Below are positions 11,884 through 64,000 of a stretch of 64,000 nucleotides of DNA, piece after piece. Under the pieces are notes generated by a model. The model worked only from the letters and a program-made list of their open reading frames with translations, did not search any database and had not been told where the DNA came from. Source of the DNA: Anthoceros angustus (lineage: Eukaryota > Plantae > Anthocerotophyta). The stretch covers positions 434,001 to 498,000 of the forward strand of contig MU008174.1 in the NCBI GenBank assembly GCA_010909165.1, written 5' to 3'. Position 1 is the stretch's first letter. Each line of letters starts with the position of its first letter. The position numbers were made by a program, and so were the translations under genes.

Positions 11884-14346
11884 ATGGCGTCGGGGAAGGC
11901 AGGTGTGCTGCCCACGCAGCTGGTGAAGCTGCTGGACTCGGACGGGAACCAGAAGGTGCGGGCCAGCAGCTACTACTATTTCAGCAGGGCGGTGTGGCGG
12001 GACATGGGTCTGATTAGGACCTGCTGCCTCTTCACGTTTCTGCTCATCACGTGAGTATCTCTGCCGCTCTCTGCCCTGTTGCTGTAGCCTGCTGGATGGG
12101 TGCTTGGCTTTTGGGCTGAGGCTAATTGACGTGCTTCTTGTGGGACAGGGCTGTGGGATTCCTGCTGCGAACTCCGGGTGGTGTTGGGTCCAGGAGCTTC
12201 TCGGACCTCAGTAGCTGCCATGGCCTGTCCTGGGAGAAGGACGTGAGAAGGTCTGCGCAACGTGAGGTGTGTTCGCAGCGCAACCCTGCTTTCCTCTCTT
12301 TGCTGCTCTTGATGCCGGCGATTTGCCTTCTACTGTGGGGATTCGCTCATGGCTTCTGTTTGCAGGAGACTGGCAAGTTAGTGGTTCTCGTTACCGGGGC
12401 TGCGGGCTTCGTCGGGTCGCATGTCTCCCTGGCTCTCAAGAAGCGGGGCGATGGAGTTGTGGGCTTGGACAACTTCAATGACTACTACCCCGTCGCTCTC
12501 AAGAGAGCTCGTGCTGCGAATCTTGAAAAGGCTGGAGTGTGAGTCCTCCTTCTTTGGTGCCAAAAGGACCCTCTTTATGCGCAGCGGTTCTGGTGTAATT
12601 CCGAGTCCTTGTGTTGCGGTCGCTCATCTTGCCGTGCGGGTGACAGGTTCATTGCAGAGGGCGACCTGAATGACGAGGAACTGCTTGCCAAGCTTTTCGA
12701 TATCGTGACCTTCACACATGTTCTGCATCTTGCCGCTCAGGTATTGTGAGGAGTGCCAGCAGCTTCTACGTCTCGTCCCTCCGGCTTTTTGGCTGGGCTC
12801 GTCGTGACGATGTTCTATGGCACGCAGGCTGGAGTACGGTATGCTACGAAGAACCCGATGGCTTATGTTGCCAGCAATGTTGCTGGGTTTGTCACGCTTC
12901 TTGAACAGTGCAAGGTGAGTTCAGCAGCCTGTACTTCCTTCTCAGTTGGGCATTTCTGTTGAAGTCCCTGCGTTTATGGGATCAGCCCTGAGCTCAGCTT
13001 CGTTTGCCTTCTGCTGCAGAAAGCCAATCCCCAGCCTGCAATTGTCTATGCTTCTTCCAGCAGCGTGTATGGGCTAAATAGCAAGGTATTTCGACTGTGA
13101 TGTCTCGTCATTGTTCTTAGCCTTAATTAAATACATCAGTGCATTCCGTGAATCCATGCAAGTGTCCCCTGCCTCACGAACGGTCGTATGCTCTGTAGAT
13201 TCCTTTCTCTGAAGACGATCGAACTGATCAACCCGCCAGCCTTTACGCTGCAACCAAGGCAAGCATCCCGGCATGTTTGAATGTTGGCGGCACGTGGAAC
13301 CGGTGGATGGATGACTGTAGACTAATGTGCTTTTTATGGTTCTGCTGTGCTCATGCAGAAAGCAGATGAAGCCATAGGTCACACCTACAACCACATTTAT
13401 GGTCTCTCCATCACTGCCCTAAGGTAGACATTCTTTATCGAGACTGGTTGCAGAACTTCACCTGTCTGTTTTGGGAGTACCGGATGTTGGACTTCTCCAG
13501 TCCAAAAGGCTGTACTGTCGTGTTTAATAACCTGCCATTCGTTGCCCGGCAGGTTTTTCACTGTATATGGCCCTTGGGGACGACCAGACATGGCGTATTT
13601 TTCTTTCACGCGGAACATCAACGAAGGAAGGGTATGTTCGAGTCAGCAGTCCAACATGTTCTCTAAGGTTACACACTGTGGCTGTGTCTGTCAACTGACC
13701 CGGCTGTTTCCTCACACAGCCTGTTAAAATCTTTCAAGGACACAATGGAGAGGAGTTGGCCCGGGATTTCACGTTCATTGACGATGTGGTGAAAGGCTGT
13801 GTGGGATCGTTGGACACAGCCTTGCCCAGTACTGGAAGCGGTGGGAAGAAAAAAGGGAAGGCACAGTTCAGAGTTTTCAACCTCGGGAACACACAACCTG
13901 TCACAGTTGGAAACTTTGTCGGTATCCTGGAGAAGCACCTGAAGAAGAAGGCTATCAGGAAGTAAGAGTCTGCTGAACACGAGATTGTGAGTTTCTCTTG
14001 TACACAGACACCCAGGTCACAGCGTTTCTGATCCTGTATGCACTGCTCTCCCGCAGTATTGTTCCGATGCCAAGTACAGGGGATGTGATGTTCACACACG
14101 CTAATATCACAAGAGCAAGAAAGGCACTTGGGTAAGTCAATTTTGTGTTTGCCACCTTTTGCAGACCTGCTTACATTCCTTCACTTGCATTTGTTTGTTC
14201 CCTTCTAACATTGCTTTTTTCCTCGCAGGTATCACCCTACAACGGACCTGGAAACTGGGTTGAAGCATTTCGTGAAGTGGTACTTGTCATACTATGCAGA
14301 AGGAAGTGGCAATGAAAACAGCCTCAATGGTTACACGGCTTACTAG
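11884..14346 (+). CDS. GAE: UDP-D-glucuronate 4-epimerase (Golgi type II membrane SDR), 12 exons
   Basis: Exons 11884-12050, 12149-12266, 12366-12538, 12647-12740, 12828-12914, 13020-13085, 13199-13258, 13359-13423, 13553-13631, 13720-13961, 14057-14131, 14229-14346. Motifs: N-terminal hydrophobic anchor, [70 protein letters not shown]. Confidence 0.93.
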
Positions 14347-14471
14347 TCCAAGAGCACTACCGTATCCTGGTGGCCAGCTGTGTTGCAGTTGACCTCAGCA
14401 AAGCTCCAACATCTTTCCTGCAACCGGAATGGTTTGATCTATGGGCAGGTTTCAGGCTGGCATTGCAGAAG

Positions 14472-15910
14472 GCCAATCCCAGCCTGCAATTGTCTATGCT
14501 TCTTCCAGCAGCGTGTATGGGCTAAATAGCAAGGTATTTCGACTGTGATGTCTCGTCATTGTTCTTAGCCTTAATTAAATACATCAGTGCATTCCGTGAA
14601 TCCATGCAAGTGTCCCCTGCCTCACGAACGGTCGTATGCTCTGTAGATTCCTTTCTCTGAAGACGATCGAACTGATCAACCCGCCAGCCTTTACGCTGCA
14701 ACCAAGGCAAGCATCCCGGCATGTTTGAATGTTGGCGGCACGTGGAACCGGTGGATGGATGACTGTAGACTAATGTGCTTTTTATGGTTCTGCTGTGCTC
14801 ATGCAGAAAGCAGATGAAGCCATAGGTCACCTACAACCACATTTATGGTCTCCATCACTGCCCTAAGGTAGACATTCTTTATCGAGACTGGTTGCAGAAC
14901 TTCACCTGTCTGTTTTGGGAGTACCGGATGTTGGACTTCTCCAGTCCAAAAGGCTGTACTGTCGTGTTTAATAACCTGCCATTCGTTGCCCGGCAGGTTT
15001 TTCACTATGGCCCTTGGGACGACCAGACATGGCGTATTTTTCTTTCACGCGGAACATCAACGAAGGAAGGGTATGTTCAGTCAGCAGTCCAACATGTTCT
15101 CTAAGGTTACACACTGTGGCTGTGTCTGTCAACTGACCCGGCTGTTTCCTCACACAGCCTGTTAAAATCTTTCAAGGACACAATGGAGAGGAGTTGGCCC
15201 GGGATTTCACGTTCATTGACGATGTGGTGAAAGGCTGTGTGGGATCGTTGGACACAGCCTTGCCCAGTACTGAAGCGGTGGGAAGAAAAAGGGAAGGCAC
15301 AGTTCAGAGTTTTCAACCTCAGGGAACACACAACCTGTCACAGTTGGAAACTTTGTCGGTATCCTGGAGAAGCACCTGAAGAAGAAGGCTATCAGGAAGT
15401 AAGAGTCTGCTGAACACGAGATTGTGAGTTTCTCTTGTACACAGACACCCAGGTCACAGCGTTTCTGATCCTGTATGCACTGCTCTCCCGCAGTATTGTT
15501 CCGATGCCAAGTACAGGGGATGTGATGTTCACACACGCTAATATCACAAGAGCAAGAAAGGCACTTGGGTAAGTCAATTTTGTGTTTGCCACCTTTTGCA
15601 GACCTGCTTACATTCCCTTCACTTGCATTTGTTTGTTCCCTTCTAACATTGCTTTTTTCCTCGCAGGTATCACCCTACAACGGACCTGGAAACTGGGTTG
15701 AAGCATTTCGTGAAGTGGTACTTGTCATACTATGCAGAAGGAAGTGGCAATGAAAACAGCCTCAATGGTTACACGGCTTACTAGTCCAAGAGCACTACCG
15801 TATCCTGGTGGCCAGCTGTGTTGCAGTTGACCTCAGCAAAGCTCCAACATCTTTCCTGCAACCGGAATGGTTTGATCTATGGGCAGGTTTCAGGCTGGCA
15901 TTGCAGAAGG
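14472..15910 (+). repeat. Frameshifted tandem copy of GAE exons 6-12 and 3' UTR (copy of 13023-14471); probable assembly artefact
   Basis: Near-identical, introns included, with several 1-4 bp indels in exons; the junction shows tgcagaa(a/g)gcc microhomology. Confidence 0.85.
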
Positions 15911-17569
15911 CCGTGGAAAGAGTGGACATCCCAATGAACCATTCTGATTCACGGTACCCAGTCCATCTGGGAAGGTGGTTGGATGCAATAATGGGGCTGG
16001 TCGGATGTATAAATACGCAAGAGCATGTATGGATGTGGGGCATCCAGATGCAGTACTAGCCTTACATCTGTGGATTTGAGGTCGAACTGGAACTTTCGAA
16101 GTCTCATCAGATGCAAGATTAGCCTTGCATCTACAAATGTAGGAAACAGGTGGGTGAGGAAGGCAGGGAACGGCTGTGCATATTGGCTTGATAATTCATT
16201 CTTTAATACCATTTGACAGTGACACTTAGATCTGTAAGTAATTTGATGAACTCGAAGTCTTGAACATGCCCATTAATTGCATTCATAAGACCTCCAGTGA
16301 GAACTTTTTTAGGACCTTCTGGACATTACCATGTTTTTGTTTTTCCATCTTGAATAACGCCTGCAAGAAGATTCTGCTCCCGAGCAGAAAAAAGTTGTGC
16401 AAAATTGTTTTGAAAGGTTTGCTTGTGTGCACTGACCGAGATTTCCCTTCACTGATGGTGTGACTCTGCTGAGACGTGATTGTGTCGTTCATGACGTAGC
16501 CAGCCTTTCTTTTACCTTTTTGCGTTACCAAACTCTGAAAATGTTTTGATCTCTCTTCTCCGCCAGGATTCCGGATTGGGGATACACTCTCACCTCTGTG
16601 GAAGCCAAGCTTCCTAAGTCAAGCAAGCATGATTTGATCTGATCCAGGATTTGAGAAAGTAGTCGGCTTAAGGCAACCTTGCAGGCAAGTTGCTATACCG
16701 TTTCACCTTCTATAATGTAAAACGGACTGTAGTGCGCTAAGTGCCCACTTTAGGGTAGTAGATCTTATCAATCGCAATCTTCCGACAGGCTCTTAGTCTC
16801 GCCGTTTTCTAGTTCCAGGATTTGCCACCCTAAACCCCCTCAGTCTTGAATCTCTGGATGGGGTGCCGCTCTTTCAAATATGCTGAAGTAAGACTCACAG
16901 ATCAGTGCCAATATGTGACAGAATCTCCACTTGACATTGCATCAAATACCTGTTGTGCATCCTGCATGTTGGAACAGTTGCTGTGAAAATAATCCTATCA
17001 CTCATGAAGCAGTCTGGATGCAATCGGCCCTGACTGTAGGAACTGGAAATGGACTTCCTAACCCTTCTGCAGTCTTCCTTGCTGAGGAGAAAAGGATGAA
17101 GCAGGCTGAAGAGATGATGAAGACAGGGCCATAGGTCGATGCAGAGAACGAAGATCCCTTCGCTCTCTTCATGGCAAGTCCAAGCATTCGCTACTGCTCT
17201 TATGCTGACACCCACAATATCCTCCTTCAAACGCTCGGCATGTTGTTCTACAGGTCAGAGTTCATCCCTGTGTCTTCGTCCCATTTTGTATATTATTTCT
17301 TCCTGTTGCAGTATTGCCCCTTTTGGAACGCAACCCTTGCGCAGACCCGGCCCTAGCACCAGCCTCCATGGCGGCCACTGCAGGGTGTTCCGTCCCCTCC
17401 ACCACTGACCTGGTCCCTTCGCCACGGTCGTCCGTCGTCCTTTCCTCCATCTTTTCTCTATCCTTTCTCCATCCTTTCTCTTCAGTGGATGATAAAAACT
17501 TCTTCCTCCTGAAACCGTGGCCACCTGTGGGCCCGAATTTGCCCTCACTTCCCTCCATATCACACTCAA

Positions 17570-24666: not shown

Positions 24667-25542
24667 TACCGTCATGTGATCGCCCCGTGCTCGCTGCAAG
24701 CCTAGCGGCGGTGAGTGAGAATCAGCGACCAAGCACGCAGGCGCAGGCTTGCCAAAGACTGGTCGCCTCCATCCGCCGGCCAACGCGTAGCTATGAGGTC
24801 ATTGAGCATGCTGAGAAATCAAGTCCACTGTTGGCGGGTTCGGCCAAGGCCTAAGCAGTAGTAAGCAAGTACATTCGGCCATACTCTAAATAGGACTCTA
24901 TGGGCGAGAGGTTGTTCAGCCCATCAGCGCAGCGTGCAAGCGATTCTCCATTTGAAGGAGAGAAAACATGATCCGTGTTTACTTCAGCTATCTGCAGCCC
25001 AAAATATCACAACAACAACAAAATGACTTACTTTGCACACCATTTCGCCCTGAAAGCCCCCCAGCAAAAAGAAGGTTGCGCTTGACACACATGGTGGTGA
25101 TCTGCACACGTCCTGGCCCTGACCGACAAACCAGGACAAATCATCCACTCATATAAGTAGTAAAAAACAAATTCATCAGGTTAAAAAGAAATCGAGACTC
25201 ATATTCAACGCCCATAAATAGCTGCCGTGATAGAGCAATGTTTCAAGTAGCCTAATCAAATGGCAAAGAGCATCTCCTAGCACATCATACCAATCACAAA
25301 TACCTTGAGAGCCTCATGTGCCTTTGCGTCCGGAACTTTTGTGACCTTCCTCTAATTACAGACCAATAAACAACCGCACTGGAGTACTTCACATATACAT
25401 CATGCTTTGTTGTTGTCCAAGCCAGGTTCTCCAGCTGTAAATCATCGCTTCCACAAATGAGCCAATTTGGTCTGATAGTGCATGTGTAGGTAACCAGCAA
25501 GTAGTTCATCTCGTGCAACGACAACTTCATCACTACTATGGA

Positions 25543-26410
25543 CCAAGCCAACCCTTTACTCACCTAGAAGTCGAGAATGTGTGATCTCAATTGCAACTTG
25601 TATATCTGATACAAGTTAGCACCGCGCCAAGACGAGAGAGCTTCAAAGCAGGAGAAAGCGCAAGAGAGTGAGAGGAAACAAGACGAATTGCATGGAACTG
25701 AGCCACGTCGCGCTGGGGGAGATAGCCAAGCGCAAGGGTCGTGTCCTTTTGCGCCCAACGCATCCCGTACTACCCCTACTTACGTTCGCATGCTTCTCTG
25801 CACTTCGACGCATGTCCACAAGTCGTGAACCCCCGCCCCTCAAAGGCCGTGAACTTCATGTTCCTTGCCGGTTCTGGTTCGACCACCTACATAAGGTCAA
25901 ACCATAAGGGCGCCTGCCTAACCGTCCTTTGCCCAATACATTCAGACCTTGCCCGGACTCACCTCTTGCTCCCCCTTCGGACTTCCTCCATAGGAATCTG
26001 CGTCCGCCGGCCACCTGTCCGCCACCACCTGTCCGCCGGCCACCATTTTTCGGATGGGCTGCTACCCATGCCCCAACTCCGTGGCCCCACAGCCTCTCTT
26101 CAAAGAGTGACATCCGAACTTGGGTTCATTGGAAGTCCACAGTCAAGAGTCGTTGGGATGCATCGGTACTCGGATAGGGTGCCATCCATTCCCTAGCTCC
26201 ATGGCCCTGTGGGGCCACCTGATTATAAATCATGCCCTCCTTTCCGCATTGTGTGGGGCCACTAGTTGTTAGTGGGGCCACCCGTCATAAATGATGCCCT
26301 CGACTTCGCCCTTTATGCACCAAGCCAACCCTTTACTCACCTGAAAGTGGAGAATGTGCGATCTCACTTGCAGCTAGTATATAGATCTAATACAAGTTAG
26401 TGCCACACCA
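25543..26410. repeat. Pair of diverged ~90-bp direct repeats (25543-25630, 26320-26410) bracketing a repeat-family segment also seen at 47735-47980
   Basis: ccaagccaaccctttactcacct...gagaatgtg.gatctca.ttgca occurs twice; 26070-26210 (gtgacatcc...gggttcattggaagtccaca...ggatagggtgc) matches 47735-47980. Confidence 0.6.
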
Positions 26411-53633: not shown

Positions 53634-56600
53634 CTACTTTGCCCGCTTCTTCTCTTCCGCCTTCTTTTTCCGCTCCTTAAGGACATCAATTGCTGCTTTC
53701 TTCCTAGCTTTCCCCATCTGAGGACATGTGCATTTGACTTGAGGTTAGAAACGTGAGAAGGTGGCGATTGCTGTAATTTACACACAGAAGCAGCGGATTG
53801 ACAAAAGTACCTGCATGGCCTCATAAAGCTTCCGCTTCTTCCGAGGCATCATGACCTGAGCCATAGACAGCTCTTCGTTGGCGGGTGCTGGAGCTGTGGC
53901 AGCCACTTGGGGCTTCAAAGGCGCTTCATCATCCTCTTCCAAGGAGGTGTCATCACCTTGCTCTTTGCGAACTCGGAGTGACTCAGAATAAGACACCCCA
54001 GCTATCTCCGTCTTCAGGTCCTCGAGATGGGCTGCTTCCGTCGCAGCAGCCTGCTCCAGCACAGGACCCCCACGTCAGTGCTATGCATGACACCAGGTAA
54101 TGCTGAGAGGGAAAGAGGCAACCAGAGGCTCCCTCGGTTAGTCAGGAAGCTGATATCGAGAAGGAAGTGCAAGCGGAAGGGCAAACCTCCAGCTGCTTTG
54201 CCGCTTCATCCAGCTCACTCCGGTGCAACGCAGCTGCTACTTCAATATGATTAGAATCATCATCTTCCATTCCAGGAAGTGGCAAAACGTGATTTGATCC
54301 AGCCTTCATCCGCTTGATGGTTTCTGCATACTCAGGCATGTAACCTTCAGCTTCATTGTCGACAAAAGGTGAAAGATGGGGAGGAGGAATCCTGCAGTCC
54401 AGATGCATTGAACTTGTAAGTCCAGAAACTAAACTACCCAGCTGTGGCTCAGCTGAACGGTAACTTGGTTGGTTGGTTGGTGCACTCACTTGCCAAGGAG
54501 GTATTCATCAGTAGGTAGCAGCAGCCGAAAATTTGCTGAGTCATACACCCATTGCGGCTGGACATAAACTCTTGACAGAAACTTGTGACCTTGGACTGGG
54601 CGGTCAACAACCTATACAGTAAACCAAAGTAAAGCCAAATGAGACAGCAACAACTTTCACATAGGAGATGAGCAAGAAGTAACAGAACCGTCAGAATTCC
54701 CTGCCTGATAATCAATGTCTTCATCAGTCTCAGGGAAAGGTGCAGCACGGCCATTCCATGAGACATCCCCTCCAAAAGCTCGGATAACGAATAGCAATGA
54801 CTCCCTGGGAACCTGTTCAGACCACCGTGGAGTGAGTGGGCAGTTCTTATCAAGAATGGGTGGGCAGTTTTTATTACACAACAGCTGTCTGCAGCTTGTG
54901 CATGCAGCATATGCATTACAGTTACCTCTCGACCAAGGAAAAACTTCAGTCCCTTGAACAGTTTACGGCATGTCTGGGTCTCAGAATCCTCCATATCCTC
55001 GTCTTCATTTGTCTTGGCTTCGTCAGCATCCCTTGCCATTTTACCATTCACTCCATTCTCTGAGTTAGACGCCTTATCGCCAGCCAACAGCTTGCTCTGC
55101 AAAGAAGCAAGCCTCTCCTGCGACTCCAGTATCTGTTTTTCTGTTTGCTCTGCCTGGGATTCTGGCATAGCAGCAGTAACATTCTCTTCCCCAGCAACTG
55201 GAGGTGGGGGCAAATCTGTAGCCAGATCCTTCATTACACCATAAAGTTCTGCAGCAAACAACTCAACTGAGAGAGAACAGCCACACAGAGATAGTAGAAG
55301 CCCAGAAGGAAAGAAGGATTCCATAACATTACCTGCAGCTTCAGCCTCCAGTTGATTGTTGAGAAGGGGAGGATATTGCAGACCAAAATCATGGTACAAC
55401 TTGAAGTTGACAAAACCAACAAGGGTCTGCATGACGGAGCAGAGTTTCAGTAAAGAGGACTAAATATAGTGCCACCAACCACACAACTACTACAAATGAG
55501 GGTACTGCCCCTTGACACATATGTATGCTCATACCTCATAAAACTCCACAAATGTAAGCATCACACGAAAGTCGACATCATCTGGAAGAACTTGGCTCAG
55601 CACATGTGGGGTAAGCCAGGTGATTTTTTGACCAGCTACTTCAGCCTGCATCCAGGTAAGTGCTTCACAGTTAGCCAAGGTGAGAATCAGATCACACCGT
55701 TGGCCGTGGAGGCAGGGCAGTGAAAATGCTCCACCAGGCTGATCATCACCTGATAATAAATGCCTTTCACAGCCACAAAAACTTTGCGCAATGCATATGA
55801 CCTTATGACGAAGGCTTGAAACTCAAGGGTAAGCCTGAAGGCAAGCAAACACAGTCAGTATAGCTGAGGCCCCGAATCCATACCATGAGCTGGAAGGAAT
55901 CATTCATGATGTAGTAAAACCACAAAGGGAATGACCGCTGCTTAGGACGTACCGCCGTGCAGACTGCACAACTTTGACTGGAATCTTGTGGGTTTTGTCA
56001 GCAGGGAGCACCGCAAAGAGATGTAACAGCGTCAATGGGTCATCCATGTCCCGAAGCGCATCAATAAATGAAGGGTATCTGTACAAAACCAACCAGCAAT
56101 GAGATCCCTGACGAAGCTTCACCATGACACGTGCCCAAGCTCTGACTGTCATCCAGGTGCCACATGGTGGCTAGACACAAACCTTTCCTTCACCAAATGA
56201 TCCAAGGAATAATCTGGCCTGCGGGCTACCAGGCGCTCAGCCAAGCTTTGGTTCTTCTTTGCCTTTGCCTTCCTCACCTTCTTTTCATAAGCCTTCAGAG
56301 CCCTGTACAATGACGAAATGTATCAGAAATCCGGGACACAAGGGGAGGAAACCTACACATTCATCCAGTACTCTTCACACCCAAACTCTTCTTCAGCAGA
56401 CTCGTGCAGATTCTCACCTTCCTTTCTCAAGCAAGGGCTCGTGCAGCAAAAAATTAATATCCTTAACATGATAGTAGGTCTTGCTGTGACCCTCAAACTT
56501 CTTCTTAGGCTCTCGAGGATGAATTCCCTTCAGGATACATAGCCGCCTGCAAATAACAAAAAACGATAAATCTTCCTATCCAGAATCACGACAGCAGATG

Positions 56601-57227: not shown

Positions 57228-58517
57228 ACCCATCACGGCTGGGCAAGGGAGCTGCTATTCAACGTGGAAGCAATTGACATGTTGGGGAGCGTGGGCAAGT
57301 TCATCATGATCCGAAGGCCTAATGTAATGGGCGGCCAGCGTCCTCTTTATGGATGCGTATTTTGAAATTCGTAGGGTTTAGTGTTTAGGGTGGCCGCCCA
57401 TTACGCTGGCCAGCGGCCAATGGCTGGAGCTCATTGAAGGCTTCGACCATTGTATTGCAAAGGTCATAGCTCCTGGGCATGTGTTTCAGTCCTGGATACC
57501 ATCTTTGCGATCGACCAAAGCTGTACATTGTGATTTGACATGTGAAAGATGTCATATTTTTTTGCTCATTCAATTTGAAACATACATTCAAATGATTGAG
57601 GGGATGGGTTACTTGTTTGATAAATGCAATGATTCAAACCCGTGAAAACCAAAACCCAAACAGACGTGAACGTCCTCGTAAACCAAAACGGCAAAGGAAT
57701 GATGCATAGGCTACGACCACAGCTGCCACACGCTTACGCAACTGCTTGATGAGGCAGGAGTTGGGGAGAAAGAAGACGCCAAGTCCATGGGCAAGAACAA
57801 TGGTTTTGACGACTCAGAAGTGGAGCGCATGTGGAACTTAGAAGTGGTCATACATTCAGTGTTGGCTCAAGGCCCGGATGAGTTACAGATTCTTCCCCAT
57901 GACCATTCTCGGCGTAGCCACTTGCATGTGCTCGTTTTAAAGTTTACCGTTTTGTCCCAGTCGTTGTGGACGCCGCCATGTTGACATTCACACACAACAT
58001 TCGGTTTTGTTTCTTTCCAAAGTATAACCATGTTTAGTTTTGATATGAATTTATTGAATGGTGTCCTTGAACACATCACAGAGGGCGCTGGCGGGCCGGC
58101 GCCTTAGACAAGCTCTCTATCATGTAAATGGAAAGAATGCAGACTTTGTGTTTGTAGACGGAATAAAGAGGCTAATGTCATTTTCAAGACCTAGGGTTTA
58201 AATCCTTTTAAGGATTGTGTCAATTTTGTGAAGGGGATCTTCCATAATTATGGTGTTGGTGGAACAAATGCGTAATTTAGCAATGGTGTTGGATTTAGTT
58301 TCCCTTAGGCACCGGATGAGTTACAACGTAGCCCCCGTCACATTCCTCCATTCTAAAGTAGACAGACTCAAAACATTGGATTGACGGTGAAAGGTCCATT
58401 TTTTTTGTGGTATAGGAAGTCCACCAGTAGTTCCCCACAATGTAGTACAAGGCTTGAGTGTTGTGATAAACCCGTCAGGGCACCGGCCGGCCGGCACCGT
58501 GATGGGTCATTGTAGTG
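57228..58517. mobile_element. Non-autonomous CACTA-like remnant related to the element at 61081
   Basis: Right end ccgtgatgggtcattGTAGTG (reverse complement CACTACaatgacccatcacgg); left side has acccatcacgg but no terminal CACTA; the internal peptide at 57770-57860 aligns with the last exon at 63600-63690. Confidence 0.5.
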
Positions 58518-58619: not shown

Positions 58620-61080
58620 TCTGGTCAAGAGGGTCCAACCCCAGAAGAAGAGGGTTTGTATATTGTTAATCATGTTAATGTTGGAACTCTTTGGCGGACT
58701 CTACACCGGTCTTGAGGCATTTCTCCAGAATGGGCTGGTGATCACTCGCTATGTTTATCGTGATACCGTCCCATAGCCCGCGTATTCGAGTAATCGACTT
58801 TAAGGATCGCAACGCTTCCCAATGCTGTGGTGCACGCGACCTTCGCCGATTTCAAGATATTCGCCCCACACATCCAACTCCTAGCGCACATTGATGTGGT
58901 GGTTGCCGGATGGGAATGCCAGGGCTTCTCTCAAGCCGGCACATAAGCGGATTGCAAGATCTCAAGATGCACTTTTTGGGATTTGCGTGTCCTCACTGGA
59001 TTCAGAGTTCGATCACCGCACCTATGTCTTGAAGAACACCTCGGTAGCAGTGGATAATCCAGTTTGCGGCGCCAAGACATGATAGTGGTTCAGCACCATG
59101 TGGGCACACCTCTATTGCTGGATGCTGCACAAGTGGGTAGTTTCGCTCATCGGCTGCGAAATTATTGGATCAATTTGGCCCCCCAGCCTTTTGCTAGACT
59201 TGGTGCTGTCCCAGACTTCTCGGGACCCCACTCTTTGCATTGCCACAGTCTTGGAATCTTATCACCAGACCAGGCCTGTGTGAGAAGCCGCCTTGGTATC
59301 CTACCAATGCCTGGGACAGCTCGGCAGACTTTGCTTACCTTGGTGAGCTTTCCCAGATCCTATGTGTATAGGAGACAAGGGACAGGCTTGCTTCTCAACA
59401 TGGATACTCAGGAGTGGGAGGAGCCCACTGTGGAAGAGCGGGAGCGCGTGATGGGATTCCACACCCACGCCATTGCAGCTCCACACGTCACTGCTCGTCA
59501 GCGCTGTGCAGCCTTATGCAGAGCCATGGATCTCACCGCCTATTCTGCCTCGTCCTTGTTTTGCCTTACAAATTTTTGTCCCGATCTAGGACATTCACTG
59601 CTTTATGGTCCCCAAGACATGTGTGTCATTGATGTTGTACCTTCCTTTCCCAAACACACCACCGTCCTACTAGTTGGATGCGGAGGGGACGGGGAGGCGG
59701 CGGGAGGAGGAGGGGGAAGGTGGGGGAGCACGAGGCATGGACGCCCATGCTTGCTTTTTCATCATCCAGTCCTGGTGGTGGCTGAAGGCCTGATAGCAAG
59801 TACAATCCCGAGAGTCCCAAGACTAGGGACAAGTCACCAGATGTGAAGGCCAAGCTATGTGCTGAGAATTTCCCTTGGACTATGGGGCCCAAGCTCAACG
59901 CTGAATAGCAAGCAGCATTGCTTGATACTTCGGTATAAAGATTGCTTCGCCTTCTCCATGAAGGAGCTGAAGCGCTGCAATGTGGCCGTCTTCCACATCA
60001 ACCTGACCAACAAGGAGCCCATCTACCAGAGGCGCTATCGGCTCAGCAATATGGAGTGGGATATGGTGGATGCGCGCTGTCAAGAACTCCTGGAGGCCGG
60101 GCTGATTTGCCCTTCTCACTCGGACTATGCCGCTGCCATGGTCATGCCACATAAGAAGGATAGCAATGGCCTATGGACAGAGAAGCGAATGTGTGGGGAC
60201 TACCGCCCCATCAATGTTGTCACCGCCCAGGACCGGAACCCAATGCCGACTCCCGAGGAGATTTTCGATAGCATTGGCAACTCCACTTTGTTCTCCATAC
60301 TCGACCTTTGGCAAGGCTTCAACCAGGTCCCAATGGCTAAGAGGACATTTAGAAAACCGCTTTCCATGGGTTCCAGCAGCTGTGGGAATGGCTAGTGATG
60401 CCTTTCGGCTTCAAGAATGCACCGGTCACTTTTCAGTGCGTCATGGACATAGTGCTTGCCGGGTCCGCCAACCTGGTATGCTATATTGACGATGTGCTTG
60501 TCCACAGCGTGGACTTTGAGTCACATCTGGTCCATTTGGAGGACCTATTTCAGCGCTTGAGGAAGGCATAGCTGACTTGCCACTTGGCTAAGTGCGAGTT
60601 TGGGAGTGACACAGTGGCCTACCTTGGACATTGCATTGTGCCCAATGGAGTGATGCCACACTATCCCACAATTTAGGCCATCCTACAGGTCAAGGAGCCT
60701 ACCAATGTTTCGGCGCTGCGAGCTTTCTTGGGTCTATTTAACGACTACCGAGTATACATCCAAAACTTCAGCCGAATAGCCAAGCCCCTCAACGACCTGC
60801 TGTGCAAGGATGTCAATTGGGAATGGACATAGGCGGTTCAGCAAGCCTTCGAATCCTTGAAGGTGAGGCTGACCGAGGCACCCATCACGGCCAGGCCAGA
60901 TTTTGGGAAGCCCTCTGTGGTCCACATCGACTGGAGCATCTTGGGACTTGGAGTAGTGTTGGCCCAGCTAGATGAGAAAGGGCAGGAGTGAGTGATCGCC
61001 TATGCCTCTCGCAGCAACAATAGGGCTGAAGCGAACTACAGTAGCTTGGTAGCACTGTCTTGGAGCCGTGTGGGACGTTT
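58620..61080 (+). mobile_element. Degenerate Ty3/Gypsy pol fragment with domain order C5-DNA methyltransferase, RT, RNase H (cut by a CACTA insertion)
   Basis: RT: EPIYQRRYRLS, KKD...RMCGDYRPIN, FSILDLWQGFNQ, MPFGFKNAP, YIDDVLVHS, KCEF, YLGH. RNase H: DWSILGLGVVLAQ, VIAYASRSNNRAEANYSS, AVW. In-frame stops and frameshifts; no LTR seen. Confidence 0.9.
58670..59540 (+). pseudogene. C5-cytosine DNA methyltransferase domain within the Gypsy element
   Basis: Motif I LELFGGLYTGLEA (58681); IV DVVVAGWECQGFSQAG (Cys codon 58917); V-like GLQD...LF; VI YVLKNT (59023); VIII DAAQVGSFAHRLRNYWINL (59121); IX EERERVMGF (59433); X QRCAALCRAMD. The motifs are in canonical order. Confidence 0.85.
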
Positions 61081-61729
61081 CACTACTAGGAACCAGGTGG
61101 GTATGTCACGTTTTTTTGTAACATATATACGTCCTATTGTTACATTATAATGTCCATTGTAACGGTTCTGGTTCGGTCCCCCGAGCCAGCGAAAACGTTA
61201 CAATTAAATTGTTAGAAGGCGATTCGTTGTAACGGTTCTGGTTTGGGGCAGGGTTGGGCCTCGGGTTGGTGAGCATGGATTAAGCGGGGATTGGTTTGCC
61301 CGCTTCTGACATGAAGGGGGCGTGCGCACACATTTATGTGCACAAGCCACATTCATGTGCCCGCACGCCACCCCCGATGATGCGGGCGGACTGTGGACCA
61401 TGGATGCCCCTTTATGGATGCCACACATCGCCTTACGATTTCTTCCTGGTGTGTTCGGCTTCTCGACAAATGTCATTTTGGCATAGGGTATTGCCAGCCT
61501 GCCACTTATTTTTCGCCCATCCGTACACCTGCCGTATTTATCGTGAAAACATATTGGCGTATTTGTATGTATGAGGATTGTATGTACGACGATTGTATGT
61601 ATTGTTCTGCATATTTGGCATACACCATCTAGAATAAAAGCATTAATTCCAGAGCATTTGTAAATCGTTGTATCGTGTTTTATGGCCAGCACTGAAGGCC
61701 AATGCACCATAAGCCATATGCATATGGCT

Positions 61730-62486
61730 ATCTAATCGCACTCGAAATGGGTATTTGACTGAGCCTCGGATGCGTTTGCGGCCTTTGGCCTTTTCGCTCG
61801 CGACCTTCTACACGATCGGTGCCTTGCATGCGTTCGCCCGCCGCCTTTCTTAGGTGCATGATCCCCGGCTTTGCGAAGGAGGGTTCTCCCTGCATACAGA
61901 CACCAAACAGTGACGATGATGCAGCATACCGAAACAAGAAAGTGACCAATATTGAACACCAATCTTACACAAGAAACCGAGGACCGCGCTTCCAGACGCC
62001 TTTTCCTTCGGAGGAAGCTGCCACAGCCTCTCAGACTTCCATATGTGGGGCCACCCCTTTCGTGGAATTTCCTTCCCTTGCGGTTTTGGGTCGCCACCGA
62101 ACCTCGGTTCTTCCCGGAATTGTGCTCATCTCAATCACTCCCATCATCAACCGACCTACCTCCATCTCTCACGTGCAGCTTAGCATGACCCTCCTCTTCC
62201 TCGGTCTCGGCTACAGATTCTCATCCTCCTCGTCCTCTTCCCCATTGTCCTCTTCCTCATCCTCTTCTTCCCCTTCTCTTTCCCCGTCTTGCCCACCTTC
62301 CCCCTCGGCATCCCCATTCTCGTCATCGGCATTGTCGTCCTCATAGCGTACTTTGTCACTTGACATATGGTCCTCAAACACACCATTACCTCCTACTTGA
62401 TCCTCCTCCCCGCTATCATCGTCATCTTCGTCTGCCACATGCCCTCCACCAGGCACGACTGATAGAGGGCGCCTCTTTCTGTCCAT
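61730..62486 (-). pseudogene. Degenerate D/E-rich coding segment inside the CACTA element
   Basis: MDRKRRPLSVV...DEDDDDSGEED...EEEDEEEDNGEEDEEDENL, continuing in the same frame through several stops. Confidence 0.35.
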
Positions 62487-62523
62487 GGGGCACTTACAAC
62501 GTGGTTTTGTTTTTAACTTGCAG

Positions 62524-63736
62524 CAACTAAAGGACGTCGAGGTTTTACGGTCGCCGATGACTTCCGCCATTTCATATTTGAAGTCAACAACTGGAAAGGT
62601 CTTGAAAACGAGCAAAGGGCTTTGGCTGATAAGGACCTGGAAGAAGGTCTTAACATATTTAACGTGCCTTCCAGTGACAAACAGGTTCAATACCAGGTGG
62701 AGGCAAGAAATATTCTTGACATGCGGGGTTTCTGAGGACGAGGGGGTACACGCTTCTAGTGATGGACGTTCCACGTGGGTTTGACATTGGCCCTATGGAT
62801 AAGCGGGTGGACATGGCAATGATGCGAACAGTGTTTCAGAGCTTTGAGGAAAAGACAACAAGTGAAGACTTGCGCATTATAGTCATGCATGGGGTCGAAG
62901 AAGCCCACACCGTCAGGGAATCCATGCAGACATGGACAGGGAAAGGCGGATTGGTATCCTTCATATGGGATAAGACCAACATGCATAATGATAGAGGCGG
63001 GTTTGAGACTGTGGAGTACATCACCGTCGGATGGTGTCTGAAAGACACAAGCACAAAGGATAGAGCTCCTATGTTGCCGAATGCTATGCACGGGACGTTC
63101 AACAATGGGAGGTCGGTTATAGGACACGCCACTGTGGTGAAGAAACAGGTCTACCTGTCCAATGACAAACTGGTGGTATGCCCTTATCAACGCCCACTTG
63201 GTCTTCTGATGAAACTTATAAGGACCTTCTCAAAGGAAGGGGACTGGGTTCTTGATGCATGTTCGGGCAGTGGACCACCACACTTGCTGCAGTCCTCAGT
63301 GGACGCAACTGCATTGCAGTTGAGGCAGATTTGAGATGTGCAGGGTACATTCCTCAACGAATACATGGTTATGAGGTCCTTCCAGATGCAGAGGAAGAGC
63401 TTACATTTCAACCGCATCGCAGAGGACCATCAGCCTGGGCAAAGGAGGTATGTATCGTGAAAAGATAGTCCAAGGCACAAGTTGTTTCATTGAGTGCCGG
63501 AGGTTGCGATTTACAACAGTGAACTTTTGGAAGATGGGCAGCAAGCGTTGGATGATGTGGCACCGCCTCCACAGGACGACCCCAAGTGTGATGTGAACGA
63601 AGACGAGAAGGCCTTGGAAGAAAACGACGAATTTGAAGACGAAGAAGTAGAGCGCATTAGAAACCTAGCGGTTGTCTTAGACTCTGTGACAGGATGCGAT
63701 TTAGTCGCAGATGAGCCTCCCAATGATCCATTGTAG
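62524..63736 (+). CDS. Beta-class N4-cytosine/N6-adenine DNA methyltransferase-like gene (N6_N4_Mtase fold), spliced, with single-base frameshifts
   Basis: Motif IV-like YTLLVMDVPRG (62765), IWDKTN, VEYITVGW, then CPYQRPLGLLMKLIRTFSKEGDWVLDACSGSG/TTTLAAVLSGRNCIAVEAD (motifs X-I-II). Acceptor ttttaacttgcag at 62523; GT-AG intron 63448-63519; acidic last exon; frameshifts near 62730, 63274 and 63406. Confidence 0.75.
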
Positions 63737-63769
63737 ACGCCTTATATTCTTCGACGATTTAACGATAAG

Positions 63770-64000
63770 TTTTGTGGTCTGGATAGAGGTATACAGTTCA
63801 AGGTTGGCCACTCGCATAGTTTGCAGTAAAAAAACCGTCTTCAAGTGGTGGAATTTTAATTTTCCTTCCTACATTGTGGACCATTGCTTTGACGAGGGTC
63901 CAGCTATCGCCGGCCAGCCGGCGTCCGTTTATTACATGCACACATGGAACCGCGTAAATCGTTGTTTCCAACTTGGGATCCATCGGACAAGGGTGGACAT
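63770..64000 (-). CDS. C-terminal end of a convergent gene, possibly a Tnp1/En/Spm-like (TnpA) domain
   Basis: VHVINGRRLAGDSWTLVKAMVHNV...KIPPLEDGFFTANYASGQP*TVYLYP loosely resembles the TnpA C-terminal pattern; partial. Confidence 0.3.

Follow-up and report, generated by a model that had tools for sequence, protein, structure and literature searches.

A transposon end inside a decaying gypsy element of Anthoceros angustus, followed by a methyltransferase-like gene with an altered motif IV

Which kind of mobile element ends inside a broken retrotransposon of Anthoceros angustus, and what might it gain from a gene of the DNA methyltransferase type? The question is raised by a stretch of 64,000 nucleotides (contig MU008174.1 of assembly GCA_010909165.1, positions 434,001 to 498,000 of the forward strand), which is here called the window and numbered from its first base, and in which such a gene lies about 1.4 kb behind a sharp boundary at 61081. 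To our knowledge, transposons that carry DNA-modifying genes of their own are rare, and they might use them to escape silencing, to time their transposition or to mark their own DNA. With moderate confidence, we read this locus as the left end of a transposon in a dying gypsy element, with an accessory gene for an altered methyltransferase-like protein, the transposon belonging to a lineage that uses transposases of the DUF7869 family rather than to the CACTA superfamily.

The boundary itself is defined from both sides. Upstream of 61081, on the plus strand, Pfam matches to RVT_1, RT_RNaseH_2 and RT_RNaseH mark the pol gene of a gypsy element, which is in decay (4 in-frame stops in 228 codons) and whose RT_RNaseH match breaks off near position 49 of the 105-position profile, exactly at 61081. 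The inserted DNA opens with CACTACTAGGAACC, a word present once in the 64-kb window, at 61081, and is followed by a subterminal zone reaching to 61250, which contains five TGTAAC/GTTACA cores where 0.08 would be expected (Poisson P 2e-8) as well as the two copies of a 20-nucleotide direct repeat, at 61157-61176 and 61227-61246. Because the hexamer CACTAC occurs 21 times in the window, the five terminal bases taken alone carry little weight; the case for a transposon end is made by the coincidence of the CACTACTAGGAACC word, the break in the RNase H domain and the subterminal repeats. Positions 61081-64000 thus represent 2.9 kb, on the left side, of a DNA transposon of the cut-and-paste kind, which landed in the RNase H region of a decaying Ty3/gypsy element; relative to that older element the insertion is young. 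Neither an inverted copy of the terminus (which would read ...GGTTCCTAGTAGTG) nor any further copy of the terminus, the element or the gypsy was found in the window, and no target duplication is visible there, the element running past base 64000. A reverse CACTA-like word at 58517, examined as a possible end belonging to an older copy, was ruled out, as no DNA homology supported it.

The gene behind this end was delimited with a family profile built from 17 relatives and matched to the six-frame translation of the window, each gene piece being searched separately, so that the scores are those of single pieces. Three pieces were found: 62517-62732 (profile positions 12-64, E-value 0.06), 62720-63331 (66-245, E-value 2e-44) and 63256-63465 (245-289, E-value 3e-11). 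As the profile positions are continuous across the pieces, the breaks between them are read as two single-base deletions, the first in a T3/C run at 62729-62732, directly 3' of a G4 run, and the second between 63273 and 63274, after GG; the alignments of the relatives run straight through both sites. Together with an acidic tail, whose coding span is 63575-63733, the gene comprises 361 codons in four collinear pieces with 0 in-frame stops. A stop stands in frame just upstream of the main exon, the exon itself has no ATG, and no start codon or 5' exon was found in the window. The two one-base frameshifts and this missing start indicate that the window copy is probably dead, unless both shifts are errors of the assembly.

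By its sequence, the gene encodes a beta-class amino-methyltransferase-like protein dependent on S-adenosylmethionine (SAM), with the PF01555 fold of the CcrM/RsrI type, and it sits in a small eukaryotic branch of that family. Against PF01555 the largest piece, taken by itself, reaches 24.7 bits, just below the gathering cut-off of 26.7; its clade relatives score 30-66 bits. Among 1.84 billion representative proteins, phmmer returned 32 matches (the best at E-value 4e-18 and 31-38% identity), of which all of the 10 tested pass PF01555, and protein-language features indicated the same family; a word-indexed search for close relatives with the largest piece gave no match, nor did exact look-ups of three open reading frames (ORFs) of the window, aimed at the sequence past 64000. 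The order of motifs is the circularly permuted one of the beta class, with DVPRG at 62765, PYQRP at 63182 and DACSGSG at 63254, collinear with both the family profile and CcrM. Pfam detects no SET domain in any gene piece or in the tail.

Compared with known enzymes, the family profile matches CcrM (4e-15), DpnA, MboIIA and RsrI, and, more weakly, the bdelloid N4CMT (1e-7) and PvuII, and it places the D-P-P-Y of CcrM opposite the family's motif IV. The fold was tested on a member of the window gene's clade, P0003, and not on the broken protein of the window. Its predicted model, with a predicted local distance difference test score (pLDDT) of 82 and a predicted template modelling score of 0.83, matches CcrM first (3e-14), followed by M.BceJIV, RsrI, HpyAVI and MboIIA, with PvuII and N4CMT lower (N4CMT at rank 26 or below). 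Profile and modelled fold thus lean towards a kinship with the N6-adenine enzymes over the N4-cytosine enzymes. An earlier note, made from the letters of this DNA alone, had proposed a clean terminus with subterminal repeats, a beta-class amino-methyltransferase motif order, an acidic tail, single-base frameshifts near short homopolymers and, in sum, the end of a mobile element with an amino-methyltransferase-like gene of prokaryotic type as its load. All of this is borne out, the frameshift proposal at both sites.

What distinguishes the gene is its motif IV, which reads D-V-P-R-G and does not conform to the canonical (D/N/S)-P-P-(Y/F/W). In a maximum-likelihood tree the window protein falls inside a clade of seven with support 99/98, and every one of the five members that cover motif IV has D-[L/V]-P-R-G (D-V-P-R in the window, D-L-P-R in P0001, P0002, P0003 and P0016), so that the separate D-type lineage put forward in the earlier note is recovered as a clade. 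Elsewhere in the family the motif is mostly D-I-P-Y-G, with D-I-P-H-G in Ginkgo. The D-x-P-R clade keeps W-x-K-x-N, PYQ(K/R)P, motif I and V-E/D-x-D, and it includes intact ORFs of 288-446 residues. Since the arginine is shared across the clade, intact ORFs included, it is an old and retained feature and not a product of the decay of this copy.

In beta-class enzymes, the aromatic residue of motif IV stacks on the flipped base, for which reason an arginine at this place should impair or change the methylation of amino groups. We moderately favour the view that the clade proteins act as regulators or partners that bind SAM and DNA rather than as efficient writers; that they still methylate DNA seems to us a possibility of distinctly lower probability.

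The identity of the vehicle is approached through the relatives. On three environmental contigs (L004, L005 and L006) the methyltransferase gene adjoins a gene of PF25273, DUF7869 (E-value about 1e-50), and on a 16-kb contig with a D-L-P-R-G member (L008) the N-terminal half of the same type of transposase lies 3.5 kb away (E-value 1e-28). The two genes are convergent in L004 and L006 and divergent in L005 and L008, and inverted repeats (at least 28 nucleotides, at 96%) delimit L005 and apparently continue to the contig edge. Chara braunii and many marine invertebrates encode DUF7869 proteins in multiple copies. Across 104 such proteins, D44, D127 and D169 (the last in G-H-T-H-E-D-I-D) are kept in at least 99%, and a predicted model (pLDDT 95) matches retroviral integrase cores and transposases of the IstA/TnsB type, weakly but consistently. 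Judged by these residues and the modelled fold, DUF7869 is an RNase H-like D-D-D transposase core. The neighbouring DUF7869 genes matched no other Pfam family, CACTA-type families included, at E-values up to 10; in the window, the only similarity to DUF7869 is one low-complexity match inside a host gene. Because relatives of the gene, one D-x-P-R clade member among them, lie beside DUF7869 and none was found beside a CACTA-type transposase, the DUF7869 lineage appears the more likely vehicle; the CACTA assignment of the earlier note is not supported, though it stays a possibility on the strength of the five terminal bases and the repeat architecture.

Two further observations were made on these contigs. 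Palindromes are scattered in the spacers of the methyltransferase/DUF7869 elements, CGATACCGGTATCG in L004 and GCCGATGTTTTGATCGGC in L006, and are candidates for sites at which a protein encoded by the element binds. In L008, a gene for a ULP1-like protease (Peptidase_C48) lies at 11918-12964 and a RecQ-like gene, called in several pieces, at 13500-15961, for which reason the source of the sequencing run SRR33208241 looks eukaryotic.

Several points weigh against the reading that we favour. The superfamily is taken from relatives that are only 30-35% identical, as the element's own transposase, second terminus and target duplication lie beyond the window, and every other member of the D-x-P-R clade comes from that one run, SRR33208241. 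The 1.4 kb that separate terminus and gene are without recognisable content, which leaves room for two nested elements. Furthermore, the terminus does read CACTA, and the subterminal repeats are of the CACTA style.

This last point leads to the best of the alternatives, a genuine CACTA/EnSpm transposon, possibly of the Plavaka type, with the methyltransferase-like gene as its cargo and a CMC-type transposase farther downstream. Besides the 5'-CACTA terminus and the two orientations of the repeats, it is favoured by the presence of Plavaka elements in the same genome and by red-algal Plavaka (EnSpm/CACTA) elements with a PF01555-containing accessory gene (bioRxiv 10.1101/2025.02.11.637652). We nevertheless hold it to be possible rather than probable, as four contigs pair the gene with DUF7869 while no relative was found beside a CACTA-type transposase, as CACTAC by itself is so frequent in the window, and as the gene has no SET domain, unlike its red-algal counterpart PAG2.

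It is less likely still that the terminus and the gene stem from different elements, in which case the end at 61081 would be CACTA-like and the gene would come from a methyltransferase/DUF7869 element, as a fragment nested or rearranged farther in. The unassignable sequence between end and exon, the missing 5' part of the gene and the character of the locus as a pile of nested elements, with older tail relics at 57768-57914, would all fit such a history; but between 61081 and 62524 no second boundary, repeat or step in composition was seen, and the gene is otherwise nearly intact, as suits a single young insertion. Least probable of all, and in our view very improbable, is an intact and expressed writer of N4-methylcytosine or N6-methyladenine in which both frameshifts are assembly errors, since the single-base shifts beside homopolymers, the coding span free of stops, the intact SAM motifs and the intact clade members elsewhere have to be set against a motif IV lacking the aromatic residue that defines active amino-methyltransferases, the lack of a start codon or 5' exon, and the real damage in the flanking gypsy.

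Under the favoured reading of a likely DUF7869-type transposon with an altered methyltransferase gene, the following sequence of events may be envisaged. A cut-and-paste transposon inserted into the RNase H region of a Ty3/gypsy element that was already decaying. The gene visible in the window is an accessory gene and not the transposase, a DUF7869-type transposase being what would mobilise the related elements. Intact clade members would bind SAM and DNA, most likely the DNA of their own element. METTL14, with its EPPL motif, is a non-catalytic partner of METTL3, and the clade proteins could likewise be non-catalytic partners or regulators, or else methyltransferases whose catalytic loop is unusual; in both cases they might help the element to control chromatin or transposition for itself.

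A more far-reaching proposal, which we put forward as doubtful, is that the D-x-P-R clade forms a functional module, kept by selection, in DNA transposons of the plant lineage, in which a SAM-binding fold with a tyrosine-to-arginine exchange would act on the DNA of its own element, either by a new chemistry or as the non-catalytic partner of D-I-P-Y/ParB-fused paralogues in the same genome. If this were true, the D-x-P-R proteins and these paralogues would constitute a two-part epigenetic device of the transposons' own. A sub-clade that keeps the SAM pocket and has its catalytic tyrosine replaced offers experiments a natural pair of an active and an altered form. To this the window copy adds one dated insertion, a defined end and a variant of the motif; alone it cannot show function.

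Transposon-borne PF01555 genes are already known from red algae, and the additions made here are a defined element end and the altered motif as a trait of a clade. In the giant transposons of Bostrychia moritziana, PAG2 combines PF01555 with SET in Plavaka elements and is also found in Mutator, Zisupton and Fanzor-bearing elements, alongside the ParB-like PAG3 (bioRxiv 10.1101/2025.02.11.637652). In both systems a PF01555 domain is encoded by an accessory gene within a transposon of the cut-and-paste type, ParB-like partners occur and most copies are degenerate. They differ in the SET fusion, which the window gene lacks, in the host, here a land plant, in the transposon partner of the relatives, which is DUF7869 and not Plavaka, and in the D-V-P-R form of motif IV, PAG2 being compared by description only. 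A land-plant lineage of methyltransferase-carrying transposons would extend the red-algal reports; a limited literature search found no description of a land-plant element of such a kind, of DUF7869 or of the D-x-P-R motif.

Among characterised proteins, the bacterial and phage N6-adenine enzymes (CcrM, 6pbd; M.RsrI, 1eg2; M1.HpyAVI/DpnA, 5hek; M.MboIIA, 1g60; M.BceJIV, 8urk) share the fold and motif order and give the best profile and fold matches, but they have D-P-P-Y/F where the window clade has D-[L/V]-P-R, and the window gene is eukaryotic, apparently contains introns, ends in an acidic tail and is borne by a transposon. The bdelloid N4CMT (8s9m; PMC8885841, PMC10406627) and the Marchantia MpDN4MT1a/b (bioRxiv 10.1101/2021.02.12.428880) are likewise prokaryote-derived proteins of the PF01555 type in eukaryotic genomes. 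These are host genes with demonstrated N4-methylcytosine activity, an S-P-P-Y-type motif IV and an N4-cytosine kinship, in contrast to the transposon-borne window family, which lacks the aromatic catalytic residue and stands closer to the N6-adenine enzymes.

The ParB-fused methyltransferase genes of plant and charophyte transposons, such as Ginkgo Gb_37443, belong to the same PF01555 sub-family on the tree as the window gene and have the same DUF7869 partner. They have kept D-I-P-Y/H and a ParB-like N-terminal half, whereas no ParB-like sequence was detected in the window copy, although in L002, a relative from the clade, an ORF of the ParB region lies upstream. Several independent eukaryotic acquisitions of such methyltransferases, some of them linked to ParB, were described by Iyer et al. 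(PMC4738411), and a 2013 paper remarked on mariner elements of giant viruses that carry methyltransferase genes (PMC3627910). For Sola2 elements the same paper gives an AT-rich target duplication of 4 bp, where CACTA elements have 3 bp. With METTL14 and the methyltransferase domain of DIRS1 (PMC4738411) the clade shares a retained fold and the loss of the canonical catalytic residues, both being thought of as binding or scaffolding modules; they belong to other methyltransferase groups and have other partners, and the parallel would be a functional one only.

Table 1. Coordinates of the features discussed, in window positions
Feature	Position	Strand	Basis
Diverged tail-exon relic of an older related gene copy	57768..57914	+	65% DNA identity over 150 nucleotides, E-value 5e-12; 45% protein identity over 38 residues
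Truncated RNase H domain of decayed Ty3/gypsy, receiver of the insertion	60833..61080	+	RT_RNaseH_2 E-value 7e-11; RT_RNaseH match ends at about 49/105
Left terminus of inserted DNA transposon, CACTACTAGGAACC	61081..61094	+	single occurrence in window; coincides with RNase H break
Subterminal repeat zone	61081..61250	both orientations	five TGTAAC/GTTACA cores and 20-nucleotide direct repeat
Short acidic ORF beginning MDRKRRPL, pointing away from the methyltransferase exon	62211..62487	-	ATG and 277-nucleotide span read from sequence; within minus-strand ORF 62211-62774
Putative acceptor site: T-rich tract, then ttaac, then cag (last base 62523)	62501..62523	+	sequence signal
Main exon of beta-class amino-methyltransferase-like gene, two 1-nucleotide frameshifts	62524..63447	+	collinear with profile 12-289; 0 stops
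Motif IV, D-V-P-R-G (canonical D-P-P-Y-x)	62765..62779	+	alignment with family and with CcrM DPPY
P-Y-Q-R-P, counterpart of family NPYQKP and bacterial HPTQKP	63182..63196	+	alignment, profile
SAM-binding motifs, D-A-C-S-G-S-G(T)T (motif I, across second frameshift) to C-I-A-V-E-A-D	63254..63330	+	alignment; PF01555 match 151-193
Putative intron, donor GAG/GTATGT at 63448 after ...WAKE	63448..63574	+	127 nucleotides; predicted from sequence signals
Acidic C-terminal tail exon, stop TAG	63575..63736	+	ORF; diverged old copy at 57768-57914

The remaining features of the gene are collected in Table 1 together with those treated above. For the putative intron, the acceptors that keep the frame with the donor at 63448, a strong one by its sequence, end at 63502, 63541, 63574 or 63586; that at 63574 has the best pyrimidine tract, and the old tail-exon relic begins to align right after it. 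The simplest intron, 63448-63519, which would use the nearest CAG, was ruled out by an in-frame TGA. A homology of linker and tail to the relatives, with a VPDSVGCD-like motif and coding through the putative intron, was also considered and rejected, as it did not rise above shuffled controls.

The tail recurs upstream of the gypsy. A second echo of it, 15 residues long (VEQMRNLAMVLDLV), was seen at 58259-58303, about 400 nucleotides past the relic at 57768-57914, and no methyltransferase domain was found beside either. These relics suggest, by their similarity to the tail exon, that members of the same family had already inserted here at earlier times. No homologue was found for the small ORF that starts MDRKRRPL; with its long acidic run it may be a genuine small gene that belongs to the element, or simply a Ser/Pro-rich tract read in reverse.

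A second word of the CACTACTA type (CACTACTATGGACC) lies on the plus strand at 25531-25544. The upstream part of the gypsy contains a 260-residue ORF (59064-59846), which matches no Pfam family at E-values up to 0.1 and includes an ERERVMGF-like stretch recalling motif IX/X of C5-methyltransferases. On the minus strand, exon-like ORFs at 54449-56310, with a basic C-terminal stretch, belong to an apparently ordinary host gene that adjoins the nest of mobile elements.

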